From IMG/VR virus record IMGVR_UViG_3300029922_000001, positions 124,001 through 188,000 of that record: DNA of 64,000 bases, one strand, 5' to 3'. This document shows, in pieces, positions 11,849 through 56,279 of this stretch. The translations under genes and the position numbers were made by a program. The notes below the pieces were generated by a model that was not told the origin of the DNA, made no database searches, and was given only the letters and a program-made list of their open reading frames with translations. The first letter of the stretch is position 1. Each line of letters begins with the position of its first letter.

Positions 11849-13190
11849 TTGAAGTTAGTCTATAAATAGACTTTATGATATTAGCTCTATTTCAACTATA
11901 CTGACTCATTAACATGTGGCATTAGCCACATGACCCACTTCCAGGGTTCTACTACGTCCTACTTTGGTAGGTCGTAGATACTTTATTGAATTCACTTTTA
12001 TTTTTGAATACTGACCATATCTACTCTTTGAGCAAATATTAGCTGATCCATTAGCATCTCTATGAATTTTATATTTACAATTAGAACAACAATAATTTCT
12101 ATTTATAACATTGTTAACATGTCCACAATTGGAACAGGTTTTACTAGAATAACTCTCGTTAATAATTTTAGTAGTCATACCGAACATTTTACCTTTTTCT
12201 TTAACATATTTAGAGAATTGTCCATGTGTCCATTGACTTATTTTTTGATTAACTTTCTTTCCTAAATTAACATTATCAGAAATATTTCTAACATCTCCAA
12301 TAGCTATGTTAGCCACTTTGTTTTCTTGGCAGAAGTTGATTACTTGTCTACTAGCTTTATGAAGTATATCTCTTTGTTGTCTTTTAAGTTTAGAAGAAGC
12401 TTTATTTTTAAGATCAGTTAATTTTTTATATCTTTTACTACCTGATTTACATCTGCTCAAGAGTTCTTCTAATGATTTATGTCTTTTATTTCTTAATTGT
12501 TTTACTGACCTTAGTTGTCTTCCTGATATTCCTATAGTTTTCCCGTCTTCGACGGTACAATAGGCAATATGAATTTCTCCCATGTCTATTCCTATCGTTT
12601 TAATCTGTCTCAATACATCTGATGGAATAATACCAGTATCCACAACTATATGAAGATAAAAGACGTTAGAATCTAAAACTAATTCAGCTATGTTAATATT
12701 TTTATTAATGAATTTACAAGGTAAATCTAATATTAAAGGTTCTGTAATTTTACCATTAGATAAATGTATTTTATTATTTTTAATTTTAATACCTAATTTT
12801 TTCCAGGTAATTGAAAATAGTTTTTTAGATTTATAAGGATATTCTGTTTTAATTTTATTATTTTCTTTTAATTCTTTTTCCCTATTTGATCTTGCAGACT
12901 CGATATTACTTTCTATTTTTTCCGCTATTGCCTGAATTGATTGACTATGGATATCATATTTTCCTTTAAATTCAAATTGTAATTCTCCTTTAGATAACCA
13001 TTTATCTTTTCTAGATTCAACATGAGCAGAGATCATATCAGAATAACATTGCCCAGCAATTTTTAATAAATGAGAACATTGTTTGATTTGTTTATTGTTT
13101 AGTGATAACTTAATAATATCAACCTTGCATGTTGTTTCTGAAAATTTTCGACCCATAATGGCACTTACTGTAAGTGCCTTATTAATTCCT
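11849..13190 (-). mobile_element. Solo-TnpB (IS1341-like) element without TnpA
   Basis: Inserted antisense in the structural operon. Right-end-like hairpin AGTCTA-TTTA-TAGACT followed by TTCAA (- strand, ending ~11849); palindrome GGCACTTAC-T-GTAAGTGCC at 13160-13178. Ends are approximate. Confidence 0.6.
11909..13156 (-). CDS. tnpB: TnpB RNA-guided endonuclease (IS200/IS605 OrfB family)
   Basis: RuvC-I IGIDMGE, RDILHKASR, RuvC-II region IAIGDV, Zn finger CSNC..CSNC, RuvC-III HRDANGSANI; 415 aa, K-rich. Confidence 0.9.
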   Translation of the reverse strand: MGRKFSETTCKVDIIKLSLNNKQIKQCSHLLKIAGQCYSDMISAHVESRKDKWLSKGELQFEFKGKYDIHSQSIQAIAEKIESNIESARSNREKELKENNKIKTEYPYKSKKLFSITWKKLGIKIKNNKIHLSNGKITEPLILDLPCKFINKNINIAELVLDSNVFYLHIVVDTGIIPSDVLRQIKTIGIDMGEIHIAYCTVEDGKTIGISGRQLRSVKQLRNKRHKSLEELLSRCKSGSKRYKKLTDLKNKASSKLKRQQRDILHKASRQVINFCQENKVANIAIGDVRNISDNVNLGKKVNQKISQWTHGQFSKYVKEKGKMFGMTTKIINESYSSKTCSNCGHVNNVINRNYCCSNCKYKIHRDANGSANICSKSRYGQYSKIKVNSIKYLRPTKVGRSRTLEVGHVANATC

Positions 13191-47287: not shown

Positions 47288-47320
47288 AGCTTATTGTAGG
47301 TTTTTTTGTATAAAAAGAGC

Positions 47321-47839
47321 ATGAGTGTGTATTTTGTTGATTCGGAATTTTACGAAGACGGAGAAATAATAGATTTATTATCCATTGCTATCGTGGCAAA
47401 TGATAATAAACAATATTACGCTGTGAATTCTGATTTTAACTTCACTAGAGCCAATAAAAATAAATGGCTCAAGGAAAACGTCTTGAAACATATTGATTTG
47501 GAGGATAAAACAAATCAAAGAAGTAAAAAACAAATTAAATCAGATATTTTAAAATTTATTGGTGATGATAAATCCCCGAAATTTGTGTCAGATTATTGCA
47601 GCTATGATTATATTGTGTTATGTCAAATATTTGGTAAAATGATTGATCTGCCTGATAATTTTCCTATGTATTGTAATGATCTACAAATGTTAAAGAAGAT
47701 AGTTGGTGCTAAGGATTCTGAATTGCCAACTTTGCCAAACGAACATCATGCACTTAATGATGCCTGTCAAGTACGCGAACAATGGTTATTCTTAGAAAAG
47801 CGTTTTCAGGAAAAATTCAAACAAAAACTGGTTTTTTAA
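47321..47839 (+). CDS. DEDDh 3'-5' exoribonuclease (Rv2179c/RNase AS-like)
   Basis: YFVDSEFYEDG, WLKENVL, YDYIVLCQIFGKMIDLP, HHALNDA. Start at ATG 47321, 6 nt after TATAAA. Confidence 0.85.
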   Translation: MSVYFVDSEFYEDGEIIDLLSIAIVANDNKQYYAVNSDFNFTRANKNKWLKENVLKHIDLEDKTNQRSKKQIKSDILKFIGDDKSPKFVSDYCSYDYIVLCQIFGKMIDLPDNFPMYCNDLQMLKKIVGAKDSELPTLPNEHHALNDACQVREQWLFLEKRFQEKFKQKLVF

Positions 47840-47847
47840 GAATACCC

Positions 47848-47877
47848 TTGACAAACTTCAGAGATTGTGGATATAAT
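47848..47877 (+). promoter_or_regulatory. Consensus sigma70 promoter of the RNA array
   Basis: TTGACA (47848-47853), 18-nt spacer, TATAAT (47872-47877). Confidence 0.8.
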
Positions 47878-48046: not shown

Positions 48047-48117
48047 GGGGATGTAGCTCGACGGTCGAGTTAGAGCCTTTTAAGCTCAAGGCGTGGGTTC
48101 GATTCCCTCCGTCCTCA
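48047..48117 (+). tRNA. tRNA-Lys(TTT), atypical D arm
   Basis: Acceptor GGGGATG/CGTCCTC; anticodon arm GAGC-CTTTTAA-GCTC; T loop TTCGATT; no encoded CCA. Confidence 0.85.
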
Positions 48118-48127
48118 CCGAGAATAT

Positions 48128-48198
48128 GGGAAGTTAGTTCAATGGTAGAGCGGGAGAATCTAAATCTCCTAATGAGGGTTCGATTCCCTCACTTCCCA
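48128..48198 (+). tRNA. Amber suppressor-type tRNA (anticodon CTA)
   Basis: Acceptor GGGAAGT/ACTTCCC; D arm GTTC/GAGC; anticodon arm GGAGA-ATCTAAA-TCTCC; T arm GAGGG-TTCGATT-CCCTC. Confidence 0.88.
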
Positions 48199-48211
48199 CC
48201 GAGATAAATAT

Positions 48212-48284
48212 GGGAATAAAGCATAAAGGGTGATGCAGTTGGCTCTTAACCTTCAGAACCTGGGCTCGACCCCCGGTGTTCCCA
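48212..48284 (+). tRNA. Degenerate tRNA-Lys(CTT)
   Basis: Acceptor GGGAATA/TGTTCCC; loop CTCTTAA; anticodon stem with two T-T mismatches, A8 and T loop CTCGACC. Confidence 0.65.
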
Positions 48285-48294
48285 CGAGAAATAT

Positions 48295-48367
48295 GGGGAT
48301 ATAACTCAATTGGTAGAGTGGCAGACTCTTAATCTGTAAGTTTGGGGTTCAAGTCCCCATGTCCCTA
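48295..48367 (+). tRNA. tRNA-Lys(CTT)
   Basis: GGGGATA/TGTCCCT; ACTC/GAGT; GCAGA-CTCTTAA-TCTGT; TGGGG-TTCAAGT-CCCCA. Confidence 0.92.
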
Positions 48368-48376
48368 CGAGAGCAA

Positions 48377-48701
48377 TTTGAATTTTGGGAAGTTGGCTTA
48401 GAAACAGCTATCTTATAATGAGTGTCAAGTGGAATGCATCAGGACGAATATAGGTATGAGAAATCTGAATAATCTATCGTGCGCGGTAGATTAATACTGA
48501 AATTCGGTTGGTACTGATGTCGTGTCTCAGCTATCCCAGCATGAGGACGTAGAACCACAGGGGAAGGACAAGTGCAGTATTAATAATATGTTTGGTAGGC
48601 GAAGCTACCGAACTAAGTAGAGGAAGGTAAGGGATAGGATATTCTACAATGTTATTAATGACCCTTAGAGACTTTGGCGTAGTAGCACACCAAAATTCAA
48701 A
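48377..48701 (+). ncRNA. ~325-nt structured RNA containing a split mimic of 23S rRNA H43/H44 (GTPase-associated centre)
   Basis: Perfect 12-bp terminal helix TTTGAATTTTGG/CCAAAATTCAAA. 48387-48423 joined to 48677-48691 aligns without gaps to 23S nt 1054-1105 (reference recalled from memory). Several internal helices; same CGAGA trailer as the tRNAs. Confidence 0.8.
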
Positions 48702-48712
48702 ACGAGATGTAA

Positions 48713-48808
48713 GGGGGTATAGCTTAGTGGTTAAAGCTGGAGACTTTTGGAGTATTTCATGGAATATTGCAAAATCTCTAGACTAGGGTTCGATTCCCTG
48801 TGCCCCTA
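48713..48808 (+). tRNA. tRNA-Lys(TTT)-like with a 24-nt insert in the anticodon loop
   Basis: GGGGGTA/TGCCCCT; GCTT/AAGC; GGAGA-CTTTT-[48749-48772]-AA-TCTCT; TAGGG-TTCGATT-CCCTG. Confidence 0.75.
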
Positions 48809-48846: not shown

Positions 48847-49176
48847 ATGTGCTGTAATAATTTTGAATATAATATACATCTAGGTCACCCTGTAGACTTA
48901 GAAATTGCCAAATACAAAACAATTAAACTTCTTCCTCGTCACCGAAAAATAAGTCCCTTAATTACGTGGATTATTAGAGATGATGATGGAACAGTACTGG
49001 GCACTACAGAAACTCATGGTTTAGAAATGAATGATCCAGAAATTAAGGGGATTTTACAAGAAGCTAAAGAAGCTTATCAATATAGAAATAGACTTTATGT
49101 TAAGTATGATACATGTAAAGATGAGTACGATAAGCTTGCCGTATTAACTACAATAAGATATGATTATCATACTTGA
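48847..49176 (+). CDS. Hypothetical protein
   Basis: 109 aa; TGTATAAA-7nt-ATG start. Confidence 0.65.
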   Translation: MCCNNFEYNIHLGHPVDLEIAKYKTIKLLPRHRKISPLITWIIRDDDGTVLGTTETHGLEMNDPEIKGILQEAKEAYQYRNRLYVKYDTCKDEYDKLAVLTTIRYDYHT

Positions 49177-50020
49177 CGATGCTGCAAACCAAGATATTAA
49201 TGATACAGTATCAATGATCGCTAGTAGAATGGGAATGAATAACGTATATCATATTCCAGATCGTGACGATTTAACATACGATGAACTTCTATGGCATATT
49301 CCCACAAAAGATGATCCTGAAAAGGCAATTTGGATCGGTTACATTCCTTTACAAGACAAATACGATGATCTTTATCAAGAATTGAAGAATAAAAACATTT
49401 ATTTAGTTAATGATCCTAAACAACATCAAAAAGCTATGGAATTTGACTTGTTTTATCCTATTATCAGAGAATACACACCACAAAGCGTAACTATAACTAA
49501 TATTGTGTCTTGTAAAACTGTTGCTAAAATTTTAGGATTTCCCATATTTGTAAAAGGTGCAATAAAATCAGAAAAAGAAAAAGGTATTAAAGCTTGTAAA
49601 GCAGACAATTTAGAAGAACTCAAAACTTTAGTAGATCCAATTTTGAAACAAACTTATAGGTCTAGAAATAAAGCTGTTTGCCGTAAATATGTCCCATTAA
49701 AATATGTTAAAAAAACTCCTGGTGATTTTCCTATAGGTAGAGAATATCGTTATTTGATGTATTGTAATAAAATTATAACAAGTGGCTATTATTGGGGCGT
49801 AGAAGATGAGTTATCTAAATTAAGTCATTCTGAAAAACAAGAAGTTGATAATTTAGCTATTATGATTTCTAAAAAATTACAAATACCTTTAATTGCTATA
49901 GATATTGGACAGCTTGATTCTGGAGAATGGATTGTAATTGAAGTTGGCGATCCCCAATGTTGTGGAGTATCACATTCGATGGCTTTTGAATTTTGGAATA
50001 AAATAGTTGTATATGAATAA
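49160..50020 (+). CDS. ATP-grasp domain protein (R2K/DUF4343-like)
   Basis: FPIFVKGAIKS, REYRY, IAIDIGQLDSGEWIVIEVGDPQCCG. Confidence 0.8.
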   Translation: MIIILDDAANQDINDTVSMIASRMGMNNVYHIPDRDDLTYDELLWHIPTKDDPEKAIWIGYIPLQDKYDDLYQELKNKNIYLVNDPKQHQKAMEFDLFYPIIREYTPQSVTITNIVSCKTVAKILGFPIFVKGAIKSEKEKGIKACKADNLEELKTLVDPILKQTYRSRNKAVCRKYVPLKYVKKTPGDFPIGREYRYLMYCNKIITSGYYWGVEDELSKLSHSEKQEVDNLAIMISKKLQIPLIAIDIGQLDSGEWIVIEVGDPQCCGVSHSMAFEFWNKIVVYE

Positions 50021-51908: not shown

Positions 51909-52703
51909 ATGAAACAAGATAAAGATGCTTTAGGCAACAGAATGAAGGATCATGAACACCGAACACGGATTTTACTTCCGCGTAGAACAAATACAATGAT
52001 TAGGCTTGATGGAAAAGCTTTTCATACCTTTACAAAAGGATTCAAACGTCCTTTTGATACGGATTTAATGAATATCATGAATCAAACAGCATTAGAAACA
52101 TGTTCTACAATTCAAGGTGCCAAGTTTGCTTATGTTCAATCTGATGAAATTACTATTTTGGTTACAGATTACGAAACTGATGCATGGTTTGATGGTAATA
52201 TCCAGAAGATGACATCAATTTCAGCTTCTTATGCAACATCTGCGTTCAATGCTCATTATGGTAAATACATTTACGATCAAAATCCTAGCGAGTTTGACCC
52301 CTTAAAGGTTAAAAAAGCTAATTTTGATAGCCGTGTATGGACTTTAGCTGATCCTAATGAAGTTATTAATGTTTTAATTTGGAGACAACAAGATTGTGTA
52401 AAAAATAGTATTTCTATGGCAGCACAATCAATGTTCTCTCAGAAAGAATTGCAAAATAAGCATTCTGACGACATGCAAGAGATGATGTGGCAAAAAGGCG
52501 TCAATTGGAATGATTATACTGTTGGCGAAAAGCGTGGTCGTTTTATCGAAAAGATTTCCACACAAAAGGATATCGAATACATAGATAAGCGAACTGGTGA
52601 AAAACATATCAAAGAAGGTGTTATTCGATCTAAATGGAAAGTCGTAGAACCACCAACTTTTTCAACAGACAAAGACTTTATTCGTCGTTTCATGCCCATT
52701 TAA
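51909..52703 (+). CDS. Thg1-like tRNA(His) guanylyltransferase / 3'-5' polymerase
   Basis: IRLDGKAFHTFT, AYVQSDEIT, WFDGNIQKM, FDSRV, WRQQDCVKNSI. Confidence 0.93.
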   Translation: MKQDKDALGNRMKDHEHRTRILLPRRTNTMIRLDGKAFHTFTKGFKRPFDTDLMNIMNQTALETCSTIQGAKFAYVQSDEITILVTDYETDAWFDGNIQKMTSISASYATSAFNAHYGKYIYDQNPSEFDPLKVKKANFDSRVWTLADPNEVINVLIWRQQDCVKNSISMAAQSMFSQKELQNKHSDDMQEMMWQKGVNWNDYTVGEKRGRFIEKISTQKDIEYIDKRTGEKHIKEGVIRSKWKVVEPPTFSTDKDFIRRFMPI

Positions 52704-53099: not shown

Positions 53100-54268
53100 A
53101 GGAATCTTAATATATACATAAGAATTTATATTTATGCTTATAAATAGATCTATTCAATATAGATTATATCCTAACAATAAACAAATTAAATTATTATCTA
53201 ATAATTTGGAAGGTTGTAGACTACTTTATAATCAAATGTTGAATCAAAGAAAAGAAGGATGGGAACAAGATAAGCAATCCTTTTCTTGTTATGATCAGCA
53301 AAAATATTTTAAAGATTATCTAGATAAACTAGAATATAATATTCATGCTCAAGTTAAACAAAATGTTGCCGTTAGAGTTGACTTAGCTTTTAAGGCTTTC
53401 TTTCGTAGAATTAAAAATAAAGAAAATCCAGGTTATCCTAGATTTAAATCTTTTGGTAGATATGATTCATTCACTTATCCTCAAACTGATTACGGATATA
53501 AAATTAAAGATAAACAAATATATTTATGTAAGATAGGTAATGTTAAAGTTGTTATTCATAAACAAATCACTGGATTTATCAAAACATGTACTATCAAGAA
53601 AGAAAGTGATAGATGGTTTGTTATTTTTACTTATGAAGCAGAATCAACATCTTATGAATCTTCTACTAATTTAGAGATTGGTATTGATGTAGGTTTAAAA
53701 TCTTTTGCAGTGTTCTCAGATAATACAACTATTGATAATCCTAGATTCTTTAAACAAGAAGAAAAGAATATTGGAAGATTACAAAGACGAAAAGAAAAAG
53801 CTAATGGTAATCAAAAACAAAAATTAAAGAAAGCTATTCAAAAACGTCATGCTAAAGTTAAAAATAAGAGAAAAGATTTTTGTCATAAGCTTTCGAGATC
53901 AATCGTCAATAAATATAAAATTATTTGCATTGAAGATTTAAACATTAATCAAATGAAAGAAAACATGAGATATTTATCAAAAAGTATTCATGATGCTTCT
54001 TGGAAACTATTCTTGAACTATCTAATCTATAAAGCGGAAGAAGCTGGTAGATTATTAATTCAAGTCAATCCTGCGTATACTACCCAGGATTGTAGTAAAT
54101 GTGGTTATAGAGTTAAAAAGAAGCTTTCAGATCGTATTCATAATTGTCCTAATTGTGGACTCTCTATGGATCGTGATCTAAATGCTTCCCTAAACATTTT
54201 GAGAATAGGATTATATTCTCTTGGTATTAAATCCATAGAAGATTCTTTTAATTAAGAATAGTAATCAC
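53100..54268 (+). mobile_element. Solo-TnpB (IS1341-like) element
   Basis: No TnpA. The 3' end AGAAG-ATTCTT-TTAATT-AAGAAT-AGTAATCAC resembles an IS605 right-end hairpin ending in TCAC (54265-54268). Left end not defined. Confidence 0.6.
53134..54255 (+). CDS. tnpB: TnpB RNA-guided endonuclease (IS200/IS605 OrfB), intact D-E-D triad
   Basis: HTH YRLYPN, GYPRFKS, IGIDVGL, ICIEDL, CSKC..CPNC, DRDLNASLNI. Confidence 0.95.
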   Translation: MLINRSIQYRLYPNNKQIKLLSNNLEGCRLLYNQMLNQRKEGWEQDKQSFSCYDQQKYFKDYLDKLEYNIHAQVKQNVAVRVDLAFKAFFRRIKNKENPGYPRFKSFGRYDSFTYPQTDYGYKIKDKQIYLCKIGNVKVVIHKQITGFIKTCTIKKESDRWFVIFTYEAESTSYESSTNLEIGIDVGLKSFAVFSDNTTIDNPRFFKQEEKNIGRLQRRKEKANGNQKQKLKKAIQKRHAKVKNKRKDFCHKLSRSIVNKYKIICIEDLNINQMKENMRYLSKSIHDASWKLFLNYLIYKAEEAGRLLIQVNPAYTTQDCSKCGYRVKKKLSDRIHNCPNCGLSMDRDLNASLNILRIGLYSLGIKSIEDSFN

Positions 54269-55337: not shown

Positions 55338-56279
55338 TTACTCTTCGTCGGTAACATATTTTTTATGAGCAGGGTTCTCTTTTTTAAAGATTCTAGCGTA
55401 ATATTCTTCATAAGTATTAAAAACTTCTCTTGTAGTTACAACAAAGTAAATCTTTTCAATTTGAGATTCTTGGTTTTCTTCAAAATATCTTAATACAGCA
55501 GAAATTTGAGCTAAAGCACCTTGATAAACATTAAGAGTTCCGCAATCCATAGGGGTAATAACTAAACTCTTGCATTGTATACTGTCAGCTAACAATAATG
55601 AACGGTTAGTTGCAGTAGAAATGTATTTTTCTTCTGTTAATCCTCCACCACCTGATACAATAGCGTGGGCAACACTCTTGAAAGGTAATTCTGGAATATT
55701 AGATGCATCAGTGTTGTAAACATGACCCATTTTAATAGGAACACCATTTTCATTAATTCTATTAAGTTGATTTTGTAGTTTAAAACCACTTAAAGTTTGC
55801 AATACTGGATCAAGAATTTCTAATAGGTTGTTATTTGGATATACAAGCATATCAGCTTTAACCTTATAGGGAGAAGGGACTAAATGAACAGAAATTTTCA
55901 CATTGTCAATACTAGGCTTGTAGGCTTGTGGTTTTTCATCATCATTTTTACGATAAGGTTGATAATCTTCAACGACTTCATTACCAATCACAACGTCTTC
56001 TTCGGAATTCCAATCGTACATGCTGTGTAAGAAAACACAGTTCTCATATTTACCGCGACAATTTTCATCCCACTTTTCATTATTGATATAATGTTGTTTA
56101 TTTGGGACAATATCATTAAAAACACCAATTAGAGGATTGACAAACTTTTTATTGTCTTCATCAAATTCTTCTTCCACCATGTTTTTAAAAACACAATCAT
56201 ATTGTGAATTGTCAAATATTACATAAAATGGACATTCTGCACATGCCTGTTGTATAGAAAGTATTTTTATTTTTTTCAT
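55338..56279 (-). CDS. Protein with C-terminal divergent macrodomain
   Basis: KADMLVYPNNNL, GHVYNTDA, KSVAHAIV, KSLVITPMDCG and IEKIYFVV follow macrodomain motif order; the canonical NAAN and GGG are altered. Confidence 0.75.
   Translation of the reverse strand: MKKIKILSIQQACAECPFYVIFDNSQYDCVFKNMVEEEFDEDNKKFVNPLIGVFNDIVPNKQHYINNEKWDENCRGKYENCVFLHSMYDWNSEEDVVIGNEVVEDYQPYRKNDDEKPQAYKPSIDNVKISVHLVPSPYKVKADMLVYPNNNLLEILDPVLQTLSGFKLQNQLNRINENGVPIKMGHVYNTDASNIPELPFKSVAHAIVSGGGGLTEEKYISTATNRSLLLADSIQCKSLVITPMDCGTLNVYQGALAQISAVLRYFEENQESQIEKIYFVVTTREVFNTYEEYYARIFKKENPAHKKYVTDEE

Follow-up and report, generated by a model that had tools for sequence, protein, structure and literature searches.

The stretch of DNA considered here, called the window, comprises 64,000 nucleotides (bases 124,001-188,000) of the 441,498-bp IMG/VR virus record IMGVR_UViG_3300029922_000001 (JGI 3300029922 Ga0311363_10000008; 33.9% GC; peat metagenomes), and it carries a tRNA gene with the anticodon CUA, referred to as W2. 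The best-supported reading is that W2 is probably a lysine-inserting amber suppressor in a phage that uses the standard genetic code. With middling confidence, it may be regarded as a functional suppressor that was born by duplication of a tRNA-Lys gene and a change of its anticodon within a fast-evolving phage tRNA-Lys operon. The evidence comes from the fold of W2, its place among tRNA-Lys genes, its conservation in diverged relatives, its identity elements, a lysyl-tRNA synthetase (LysRS) encoded by the same phage, and the stop codons of the genome. The features of the operon and its immediate surroundings in the window are as follows.

47306-47839, + strand: gene of an Rv2179c-like 3'-5' exoribonuclease, directly upstream of the tRNA operon (Pfam PF16473, 36 bits, cut-off 27)
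47848-47877, + strand: sigma-70 consensus promoter of the tRNA operon, TTGACA-18 nt-TATAAT (12 of 12 consensus matches)
48047-48117, + strand: tRNA-Lys (UUU) with A73 (ARAGORN; Rfam 54.5 bits; orthologues L005_2 and L008_2)
48128-48198, + strand: W2, predicted amber suppressor tRNA with anticodon CUA (ARAGORN, Rfam and fold)
48212-48284, + strand: decayed Lys(CUU)-like tRNA, probable pseudogene (Rfam 45 bits, mispairs marked)
48295-48367, + strand: tRNA-Lys (CUU) with A73 (Rfam 68.9 bits; identical in the relative L005)
48369-48712, + strand: 345-nt operon-internal RNA or spacer (metatranscriptome contigs; present in L005, absent in L008)
48713-48808, + strand: Lys(UUU)-type tRNA with a 24-nt insert after the anticodon (Rfam, relatives and fold)
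51909-52703, + strand: Thg1-like tRNA 5'-end guanylyltransferase/repair enzyme, syntenic with the operon (Pfam PF04446, 106.8 bits; beside the array in L005 and L010)

The CUA tRNA and its tRNA-Lys operon

There is consistent evidence that W2 has the structure of a sound tRNA. ARAGORN calls a 73-nt tRNA with the anticodon CTA at window 48128-48200, one of its four tRNAs in the window, and the Rfam model RF00005 (gathering score 29 bits), which detects five there, matches 48128-48198 over the full length of 1-71 with 66.7 bits (E 2.6e-12), all stem pairs being canonical and the score being the second highest among the tRNAs of the window. The minimum-free-energy fold is a clean cloverleaf (z = -3.4). 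The anticodon loop, A32-U33-C34-U35-A36-A37-A38, has the seven nucleotides, the U33 and the purine 37 that belong to an amber suppressor anticodon. The discriminator is A73, the first pair of the acceptor stem is G1-C72, the variable loop is 4 nt long, and only the CC of the 3'-terminal CCA is encoded; no CCA-adding enzyme was found in the phage record. A first-pass annotation of the window, made by a model without database searches, had described a well-paired CTA cloverleaf with the loop A-T-CTA-A-A and the discriminator A, and ARAGORN, Rfam and the fold all agree with it. ARAGORN gives the label tRNA-Pyl to any CTA tRNA. This assignment is ruled out by the canonical cloverleaf with its normal D-loop and variable loop, as W2 shares with tRNA-Pyl the anticodon CUA only. 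The sole PylS_Cterm signal in the record is a generic class II match of the LysRS (29.7 bits, cut-off 178), and no PylRS is present there.

W2 is the second gene of the operon, lying between Lys-UUU and Lys-CUU. All tRNAs of the operon have A73 and are joined by similar spacers of the form C(C)GAGA..ATATGGG. Contigs from four independent metatranscriptomes cover 48377-48662 of the operon region with 99-100% identity.

Relatives were found via homologues of the flanking exoribonuclease, namely three syntenic contigs, L005, L008 and L010, whose flanks share 98% (93-98% in DNA), 59% and 55% protein identity with this genome, respectively. The more distant exoribonuclease homologues P0125 and P0128 came from unrelated small phages and were set aside. 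The TTGACA...TATAAT promoter, a leader of ~200 nt and a Lys array are common to all three relatives, with the exoribonuclease gene in the same position ahead of the array, and the cassettes within the arrays differ. Two of the relatives carry a CUA tRNA.

L005:6533-6604: CUA tRNA, last in an array of two Lys-UUU, a decayed copy and Lys-CUU
L008:3300-3370: CUA-loop tRNA in an array with two Lys-UUU and Lys-CUU; acceptor stem and D-arm are the same as in W2

A73 is found in all three CUA tRNAs (W2, L005_5 and L008_4). They are each other's nearest relatives (80% and 73% identity), except that the best matches of W2 are Lys-array tRNAs at 75%. The next closest to the CUA tRNAs, after one another, are all Lys-array tRNAs (65-75%), with none of the genome's non-Lys tRNAs among them; the top nine neighbours of W2 are all Lys-array tRNAs, at 65-75% identity. 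In a three-way alignment of the CUA tRNAs, all 53 of the 53 cells of the 18 scored stem pairs are standard pairs, and five pairs have changed on both sides, against none in slid registers. Hence, the CUA anticodon and the fold were kept across diverged relatives although the body changed in sequence and the gene took another place in the operon, which argues for function. The position in the Lys array and the nearest sequences likewise support the descent of W2 from a tRNA-Lys. The first-pass annotation had proposed a Lys-derived suppressor, and its view of the ancestry is borne out by the tandem tRNA-Lys array, the Lys-only nearest relatives, A73 and the short variable loop.

Outside this group, the exact pattern of W2 has no match in IMG/VR. 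A looser, structure-aware pattern gave 36 IMG/VR loci, which outside the same genome belong to other Sup families with U73 or G73. In a 379-kb phage of 41.5% GC (L054:5248-6034), two CTA tRNAs with G73 are followed by Lys-UUU and Lys-CUU within 700 nt; it was rejected as a related system, the phage being unrelated and its two Sup tRNAs having G73 and not being Lys-derived. The huge phage LR756504 also encodes a LysRS but lacks any CUA-loop tRNA of the W2 type. A second CTA tRNA occurs in the present genome at 353,602-353,673 (L013:303-373), just downstream of a gene that ends in TAG. It scores 54.6 bits, has G73 and the loop CUCUAAA, is unrelated to W2 (at most 56% identical to any other tRNA), and its discriminator is Gln-, Trp- or Glu-like. 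This tRNA, the decayed copy at 48212-48284 and the phage LysRS were all missing from the first-pass annotation.

The main rival explanation sees the operon, together with the LysRS and the RNA-repair enzymes of the phage, as a counter-defence against tRNA-Lys nucleases of the PrrC, RloC or PARIS type. Here the CUA copy would be a by-product or decoy, kept for escaping or soaking up a nuclease or synthetase and not for reading UAG. As a full account of W2 this is unlikely; it is compatible with a suppressor, and the two are not exclusive. Much in the operon suits it. The composition of the array differs between strains that are 93-98% identical in DNA. One copy is decayed, with two U-U mispairs in the anticodon stem and no cloverleaf fold (z = -0.3); it is missed by ARAGORN and kept almost unchanged in L005. 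Other copies carry inserts that hide the anticodon. The loop of the tRNA at 48713-48808 reads CUUUU[24 nt]AA, that is, Lys-UUU plus an insert, which replaces the earlier label of a Gln tRNA with an intron (ARAGORN: Gln-TTG plus intron). Similarly, L010:8733-8828 is a Lys-CUU with a 24-nt insert directly after the anticodon. Though their sequences are unrelated, both inserts fold as the same hairpin, which pairs with the anticodon and hides it (z -3.5 and -3.8). The shape is not bulge-helix-bulge, and the length is much too short for a group I intron.

The enzymes of the phage suit it as well. The Thg1-like enzyme and the 3'-5' exoribonuclease, the latter a candidate tRNA 3'-end trimming enzyme, stand beside the array, and the genome encodes a ligase:

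genome 108,702-109,961 (L020:702-1961), - strand: T4 Rnl1-like RNA ligase (phrog_562, E 2e-17)

T4 Rnl1 reseals tRNA-Lys that was cut by the PrrC anticodon nuclease, and Rnl1 and Pnk form the repair system of T4. The phage LysRS is a divergence hotspot, with only 75% identity to its counterpart in a strain that matches the genes around it at 97-100%. The focus on lysine is not accounted for by codon demand, as GAA and AAT are used as much as AAA and have no phage tRNA. Phage tRNA-Lys variants are known to defeat PARIS, and changes in the anticodon loop evade nucleases (PMC11464382, PMC10264068). On the other hand, a CUA tRNA is unable to replace a cut Lys decoder, and the three relatives retain CUA despite compensated changes in 20-34% of the tRNA body, a sign that either the reading of UAG or the recognition of CUA is under selection. 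With its shuffled cassettes, its hidden anticodons and the repair enzymes in the genome, the operon is in any case a good site for studying the arms race between phages and nucleases over tRNA-Lys.

Several other features surround the operon. The 5' part of the 345-nt RNA (48386-48441) resembles helices 43/44 of the GTPase-associated centre of 23S rRNA, with a below-threshold match to RF02541 (14 bits, E 0.028), and this RNA might serve the phage as a stable mimic of a ribosomal protein-binding site (the uL11/thiostrepton site). A Macro-domain protein (window 55338-56279, - strand) and an R2K-type ATP-grasp protein (49160-50020, + strand) flank the tRNA/Thg1 region, are syntenic in the relatives, and may belong to a set of RNA-end processing enzymes. 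Two TnpB/IS605 OrfB-type genes are found in the phage genome (window 53134-54255, + strand, and 11909-13156, - strand), one of them 4 kb from the tRNA operon and not at that place in L005, L008 or L010.

Amino-acid identity of the CUA tRNA and the phage LysRS

Judged from its identity elements, the most likely charge of W2 is lysine. The one-step anticodon neighbours of CUA belong to Lys, Gln, Glu, Trp, Tyr, Leu and Ser, and among these only Lys joins a short variable loop with A73 (identity rules, PMC9976931). The Lys identity set consists of U34, U35, U36 and A73, and the Gln set of U1-A72, G2-C71, G3-C70, G10, Y34, U35, G36, A37, U38 and G73 (PMC1483225). W2 has A73 and the major Lys determinant U35. 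It departs from the Lys set only at position 36 and from the Gln set at 73, 1-72, 38 and 36. Amber suppressors with U35 are lysylated, a laboratory amber tRNA-Lys inserts lysine despite A36, and a change of A73 to G in such a tRNA lowers suppression and shifts it toward glutamine (PMC9976931). Because U35 and A73, the strongest lysine determinants that an amber suppressor can keep, are found in W2 on the body of a Lys tRNA, its lysylation is probable. BLAST comparison with GenBank phages and E. coli genomes was uninformative on the isotype, as Asn, Val, His and Gly tRNAs were matched via generic similarity in the D- and T-arms.

The phage encodes a synthetase of its own for this amino acid:

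genome 264,815-266,290 (L001:1018-2493): class II LysRS, 491 aa (NF001756, PDB match, catalytic motifs)

The protein scores 474 bits with NF001756 (cut-off 468), and its best PDB match is 3a74, a LysRS (E 8e-95). It has the OB-fold as well as the catalytic domain, and the catalytic motifs FRNEG, HNPEF, LEWY, RFE, GYEIANGYSELN and GVGIGLDR are intact. Its closest bacterial homologues are ~45% identical, and it departs at 65 of 211 columns from residues that are conserved in at least 93% of 57 bacterial sequences. When mapped by motif and numbering to the human LysRS-tRNA structure (PMC11643047), the retained OB-fold residues R71, F78, Q89 and E127 correspond to the contacts of U35 and U36, and the clade-specific N75, M76, V91 and A125 fall on the contacts of U33 and of the modified wobble base. 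An altered pocket for base 34 would suit tRNAs with C34, that is, those with the anticodons CUU and CUA. It is therefore possible, though this can only be put forward tentatively, that the phage carries a dedicated UAG lysine system, in which its own LysRS with the remodelled wobble-base pocket charges the Lys-derived CUA tRNA, and UAG is partly read as lysine in infected cells. If true, this would be the first case of a virus that decodes UAG as lysine, and a code change would have been caught with its machinery in place and conserved across relatives, sense TAG codons having yet to appear. Near the LysRS gene lie a PARP-like gene, a second Rv2179c-like exoribonuclease and IF3.

A second rival explanation accepts W2 as an amber suppressor and holds that a host enzyme charges it with glutamine or another residue, the Lys context being its birthplace only. 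This is distinctly unlikely. No GlnRS or GluRS gene occurs in the phage record, and many bacteria have no GlnRS either, which counts against glutamine. U35 is a key element for both GlnRS and LysRS, which compete for amber suppressors (PMC1483225), and W2 does have C34, U35, A37, G2-C71, G3-C70 and G10 of the Gln set. Likewise, TAG recoding in phages has so far been seen only as TAG-to-Gln (10.1101/2021.08.26.457843). Nevertheless, W2 has A73 and not G73, G1-C72 and not U1-A72, and A38 and not U38, and it is A73 that keeps an amber tRNA-Lys specific for lysine (PMC9976931).

TAG is a rare but genuine stop codon

The record belongs to a huge phage that encodes topoisomerase II, ribonucleotide reductase, a clamp and a clamp loader, along with a translation kit of at least 26 tRNAs, tmRNA, IF3, a PTH2 peptidyl-tRNA hydrolase and the Thg1-like enzyme. 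Though CheckV gives a completeness of 100%, the record is probably incomplete and covers ~85% of a genome of at least 521 kb. A 521,591-bp ENA contig (ERZ27248709 k141_1408874; L014, L016) starts 30 bases earlier, matches the record at 100% identity over 21.4 kb and extends ~80 kb past the 3' end of the record.

Stops were counted with a gene picker trained on the codon usage of the long open reading frames (ORFs) of the genome. Genome-wide, the 564 called genes end in TAA (430), TGA (87) or TAG (47), and the TAG share of 8.3% is about that of E. coli, where it is 7.4% (PMC8954436). Within the window, the 38 genes that lie wholly inside have 35 TAA, 3 TGA and no TAG stops, in agreement with the 37 TAA, 3 TGA and 0 TAG that the first-pass annotation had counted in 40 genes. 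The absence of TAG that it noted therefore holds for the window (0 of 38 genes) and not for the genome (47 of 564). The suggestion that the suppressor is harmless to the phage through lack of TAG finds no support, as the genes ending in TAG include those of the clamp loader and the sliding clamp. The same annotation had called for a genome-wide stop count and had named normal TAG usage in the rest of the genome as the first half of what would speak against it, and normal usage is what the count gives. The genes that bear most directly on the use of TAG are the following.

genome 55,157-56,257: clamp loader, ends in TAG
genome 56,944-58,113: sliding clamp, ends in TAG
genome 61,526-63,688: terminase large subunit (PHROGs), intact, ends in TAA
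genome 76,851-79,475: portal (PHROGs), intact, ends in TAA

The TAG stops are located in replication genes and small accessory genes, and none is found in the long core, packaging or giant genes. The Pfam hallmark models (Terminase_6N, sheath, T4 portal) had no match in the genome; terminase and portal were found with PHROGs. About 11 of the 47 TAG stops are accounted for by a repeated intergenic signal, (A)ATCCCCAA TAG N7-12 GAGGTATACT N6-7 ATG, which occurs in ~100-160 copies before small genes on the + strand of genome 320-441 kb (e.g. 406,792-406,827). It may be a phage-specific promoter that yields near-leaderless mRNAs.

For the 441-kb record, recoding of TAG (code 15) can be rejected on several grounds. 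In a comparison of sliding ORF coverage under four stop sets, the coverage by long ORFs was 0.752 with the standard code, 0.798 with TAG as sense and 0.793 with TGA as sense. The comparison of coding density in code 11 and code 15 that the first-pass annotation had proposed thus gives no gain specific to TAG. Its observation that multi-kb genes are unbroken and TAG is not recoded was also upheld, as genes of 2843 and 3178 aa in the window are intact in code 11. Terminase and portal are intact, as listed, and no RF-1 domain (PF00472), hence no release factor or RF2, was found in the record by a search that gave matches in control genomes.

The same annotation had further suggested regulated read-through, which was not sustained. 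The frame stays open for 60 codons or more past 17% of the TAG stops and 10% of the TAA stops, and neighbouring genes in the same frame explain the difference, so that there is no excess over TAA. In each of the eight long TAG-joined pairs, the extension is a separate gene with its own ATG ~8 codons past the TAG and the conserved GAGGTATACT signal in front. TAG stops also switch to other stops between close strains. It follows that the genome uses the standard code, that TAG is a genuine but rare stop in it, and that the suppressor is not needed for the phage's own genes.

A third rival explanation places the need for W2 in sense TAG codons, or in programmed read-through, within the ~70 kb missing from the record or in a few special genes. 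The longer ENA contig leaves room for such genes, and the presence of two unrelated CTA tRNAs in one genome would suit them. This is most unlikely, as sense TAG was found neither in the 441-kb record nor in the first 10 kb past its end, where TAG is again a stop (3 of 17 genes), nor across ~60 kb of relatives, whose orthologues have no in-frame stops. Moreover, terminase and portal, the usual sites of recoding, end in TAA, and the record lacks RF2.

Weight of the evidence and comparison with known systems

A number of observations weigh against a working, lysine-inserting suppressor. The L008 CUA tRNA folds with an 8-nt anticodon loop (ACUCUAAA), being perhaps a damaged gene copy or one whose decoding is altered, and the array of L010 (Lys-CUU with the 24-nt insert, and Lys-UUU) has no CUA tRNA. 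The unusual A32 of W2, found in no other tRNA of the genome, might make decoding weaker. Like any amber suppressor, W2 has A36 in place of the Lys determinant U36, and as the U36-contacting residue E127 of the LysRS is unchanged, charging may be poor; this unchanged contact also argues against a special adaptation of the enzyme to A36. The LysRS gene lies 93 kb from W2, so the two share no operon. The metatranscriptome contigs show the operon region in RNA libraries and not the mature CUA tRNA, which was not seen in them, though the absence of tRNAs is usual in such contigs and their ends are partly made by the assembly. Finally, the stretches examined cover all but ~70 kb (about 15%) of the probable full genome.

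The distribution of TAG stops gives less support than it seems to promise. For the window alone, 3.1 TAG stops are expected and the probability of none is 0.04, which is weak evidence. The window is part of a run in which 93 genes in a row end in a stop other than TAG (genome 90,462-226,985; permutation P = 0.006); with gene length allowed for, 7.0 TAG stops are expected in the run and 0 are seen (P = 0.0007). There, 8 TGA stops are seen where 16.2 are expected, and the TAG trinucleotide is not depleted overall. Such a block would be expected if TAG stops were selected against in genes that are expressed together with the suppressor. However, of 35 orthologous genes of the block, 2 have a TAG stop in the relatives, for which reason a conserved purge of TAG was set aside; in the exoribonuclease gene immediately before the operon, the stop is TAG in L005 and TAA in this genome. 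The TAG stops of the phage have no stronger +4 context (T at 39% of TAG and 49% of TAA). In bacteria free of suppressors, too, UAG is almost absent from highly expressed genes, as in 2 of 253 in E. coli (PMC8954436). The TAG-free block is hence real but largely ordinary.

The remaining rival explanation, that W2 is a duplicate under neutral drift, reads CUA by chance and is either silent or without harm, is scarcely credible, as the clearly decayed copy, the quick turnover of the array and the abnormal loop of the L008 copy are outweighed by the perfect cloverleaf of W2, its high rank among the tRNA scores of the window, the compensatory changes and the CUA retained in three relatives. If W2 were inactive, this would be an ordinary phage tRNA cluster with a drifted copy.

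With W2 taken as a lysine-inserting suppressor, its action could proceed as follows. Host RNA polymerase would transcribe the operon from the start of infection, since a consensus sigma-70 promoter precedes the operon and metatranscriptomes contain RNA from it. W2 would then be lysylated by the class II LysRS of the phage, by the host LysRS, or by both, and would insert lysine at UAG in competition with RF1. The best guess for the selected effect is a partial read-through of UAG stops of the host or of competitors. Should W2 indeed insert lysine, the set of amino acids used by phage suppressors would be wider, and a natural LysRS/tRNA(CUA) pair of possible use in code expansion would be at hand.

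The closest experimental parallel to W2 itself is the amber tRNA-Lys of E. coli (McClain et al., 1990, as reported in PMC9976931), which likewise has a tRNA-Lys body, CUA and A73; according to that report it inserts lysine, and A73 keeps the insertion of glutamine away. It is a laboratory construct of E. coli, whereas W2 is natural, phage-borne, has A32 and is known here from its sequence. The operon as a whole resembles the tRNA-Lys counter-defence of phages (T5 against PARIS, PMC11464382; loop variants, PMC10264068) in its several tRNA-Lys genes and their varied anticodon loops, and it resembles the tRNA-Lys repair of T4 in that the genome has an Rnl1-like ligase and other tRNA-end repair enzymes. 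Those counter-defence tRNAs keep a Lys anticodon, whereas the CUA copy cannot restore the decoding of Lys codons.

Stop codons are recoded with the help of suppressor tRNAs in Lak, crAss-like, Agate and Jade phages, as TAG-to-Gln and TGA-to-Trp only (Borges et al., 10.1101/2021.08.26.457843). Like these phages, the present one encodes a tRNA that reads a stop codon, has a low GC content with TAA dominant and TAG rarest, is very large, and has many translation genes. Unlike them, it has no sense TAG, no recoded structural or packaging genes and no RF2, and its tRNA is of the Lys type (A73) and not of the Gln type. In the code-change operon of the Jade phages (TrpRS, RF1 and a TGA suppressor; Borges et al., Fig. 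S6), as here, the synthetase matches the presumed amino-acid family of the suppressor. In contrast, the present phage has its LysRS far from the tRNA and encodes no release factor in the record, and recoded target genes did not turn up in it.

The beginnings of phage code changes have so far been inferred from comparisons, and the proposed order is depletion of a stop codon, then a suppressor, then sense stop codons (10.1101/2021.08.26.457843). The Agate example of Borges et al. combines the standard code with a suppressor tRNA, as does the present phage, which fits this order. The Agate case is a TGA suppressor in a gut phage, whereas here two amber suppressors occur in a phage from peat. The state of the present phage most likely corresponds to the stage of Borges et al. 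at which a suppressor has been acquired and there is no sense TAG yet, before recoding, with lysine in the place of glutamine. The conservation of one of its amber suppressors across diverged relatives implies that this state is not merely transient. What would be new in comparison with the intermediate of Borges et al. is the amino-acid identity and the matching phage synthetase, and a phage with a conserved suppressor, such a synthetase and TAG still in use as a stop offers an intermediate that can be tested.

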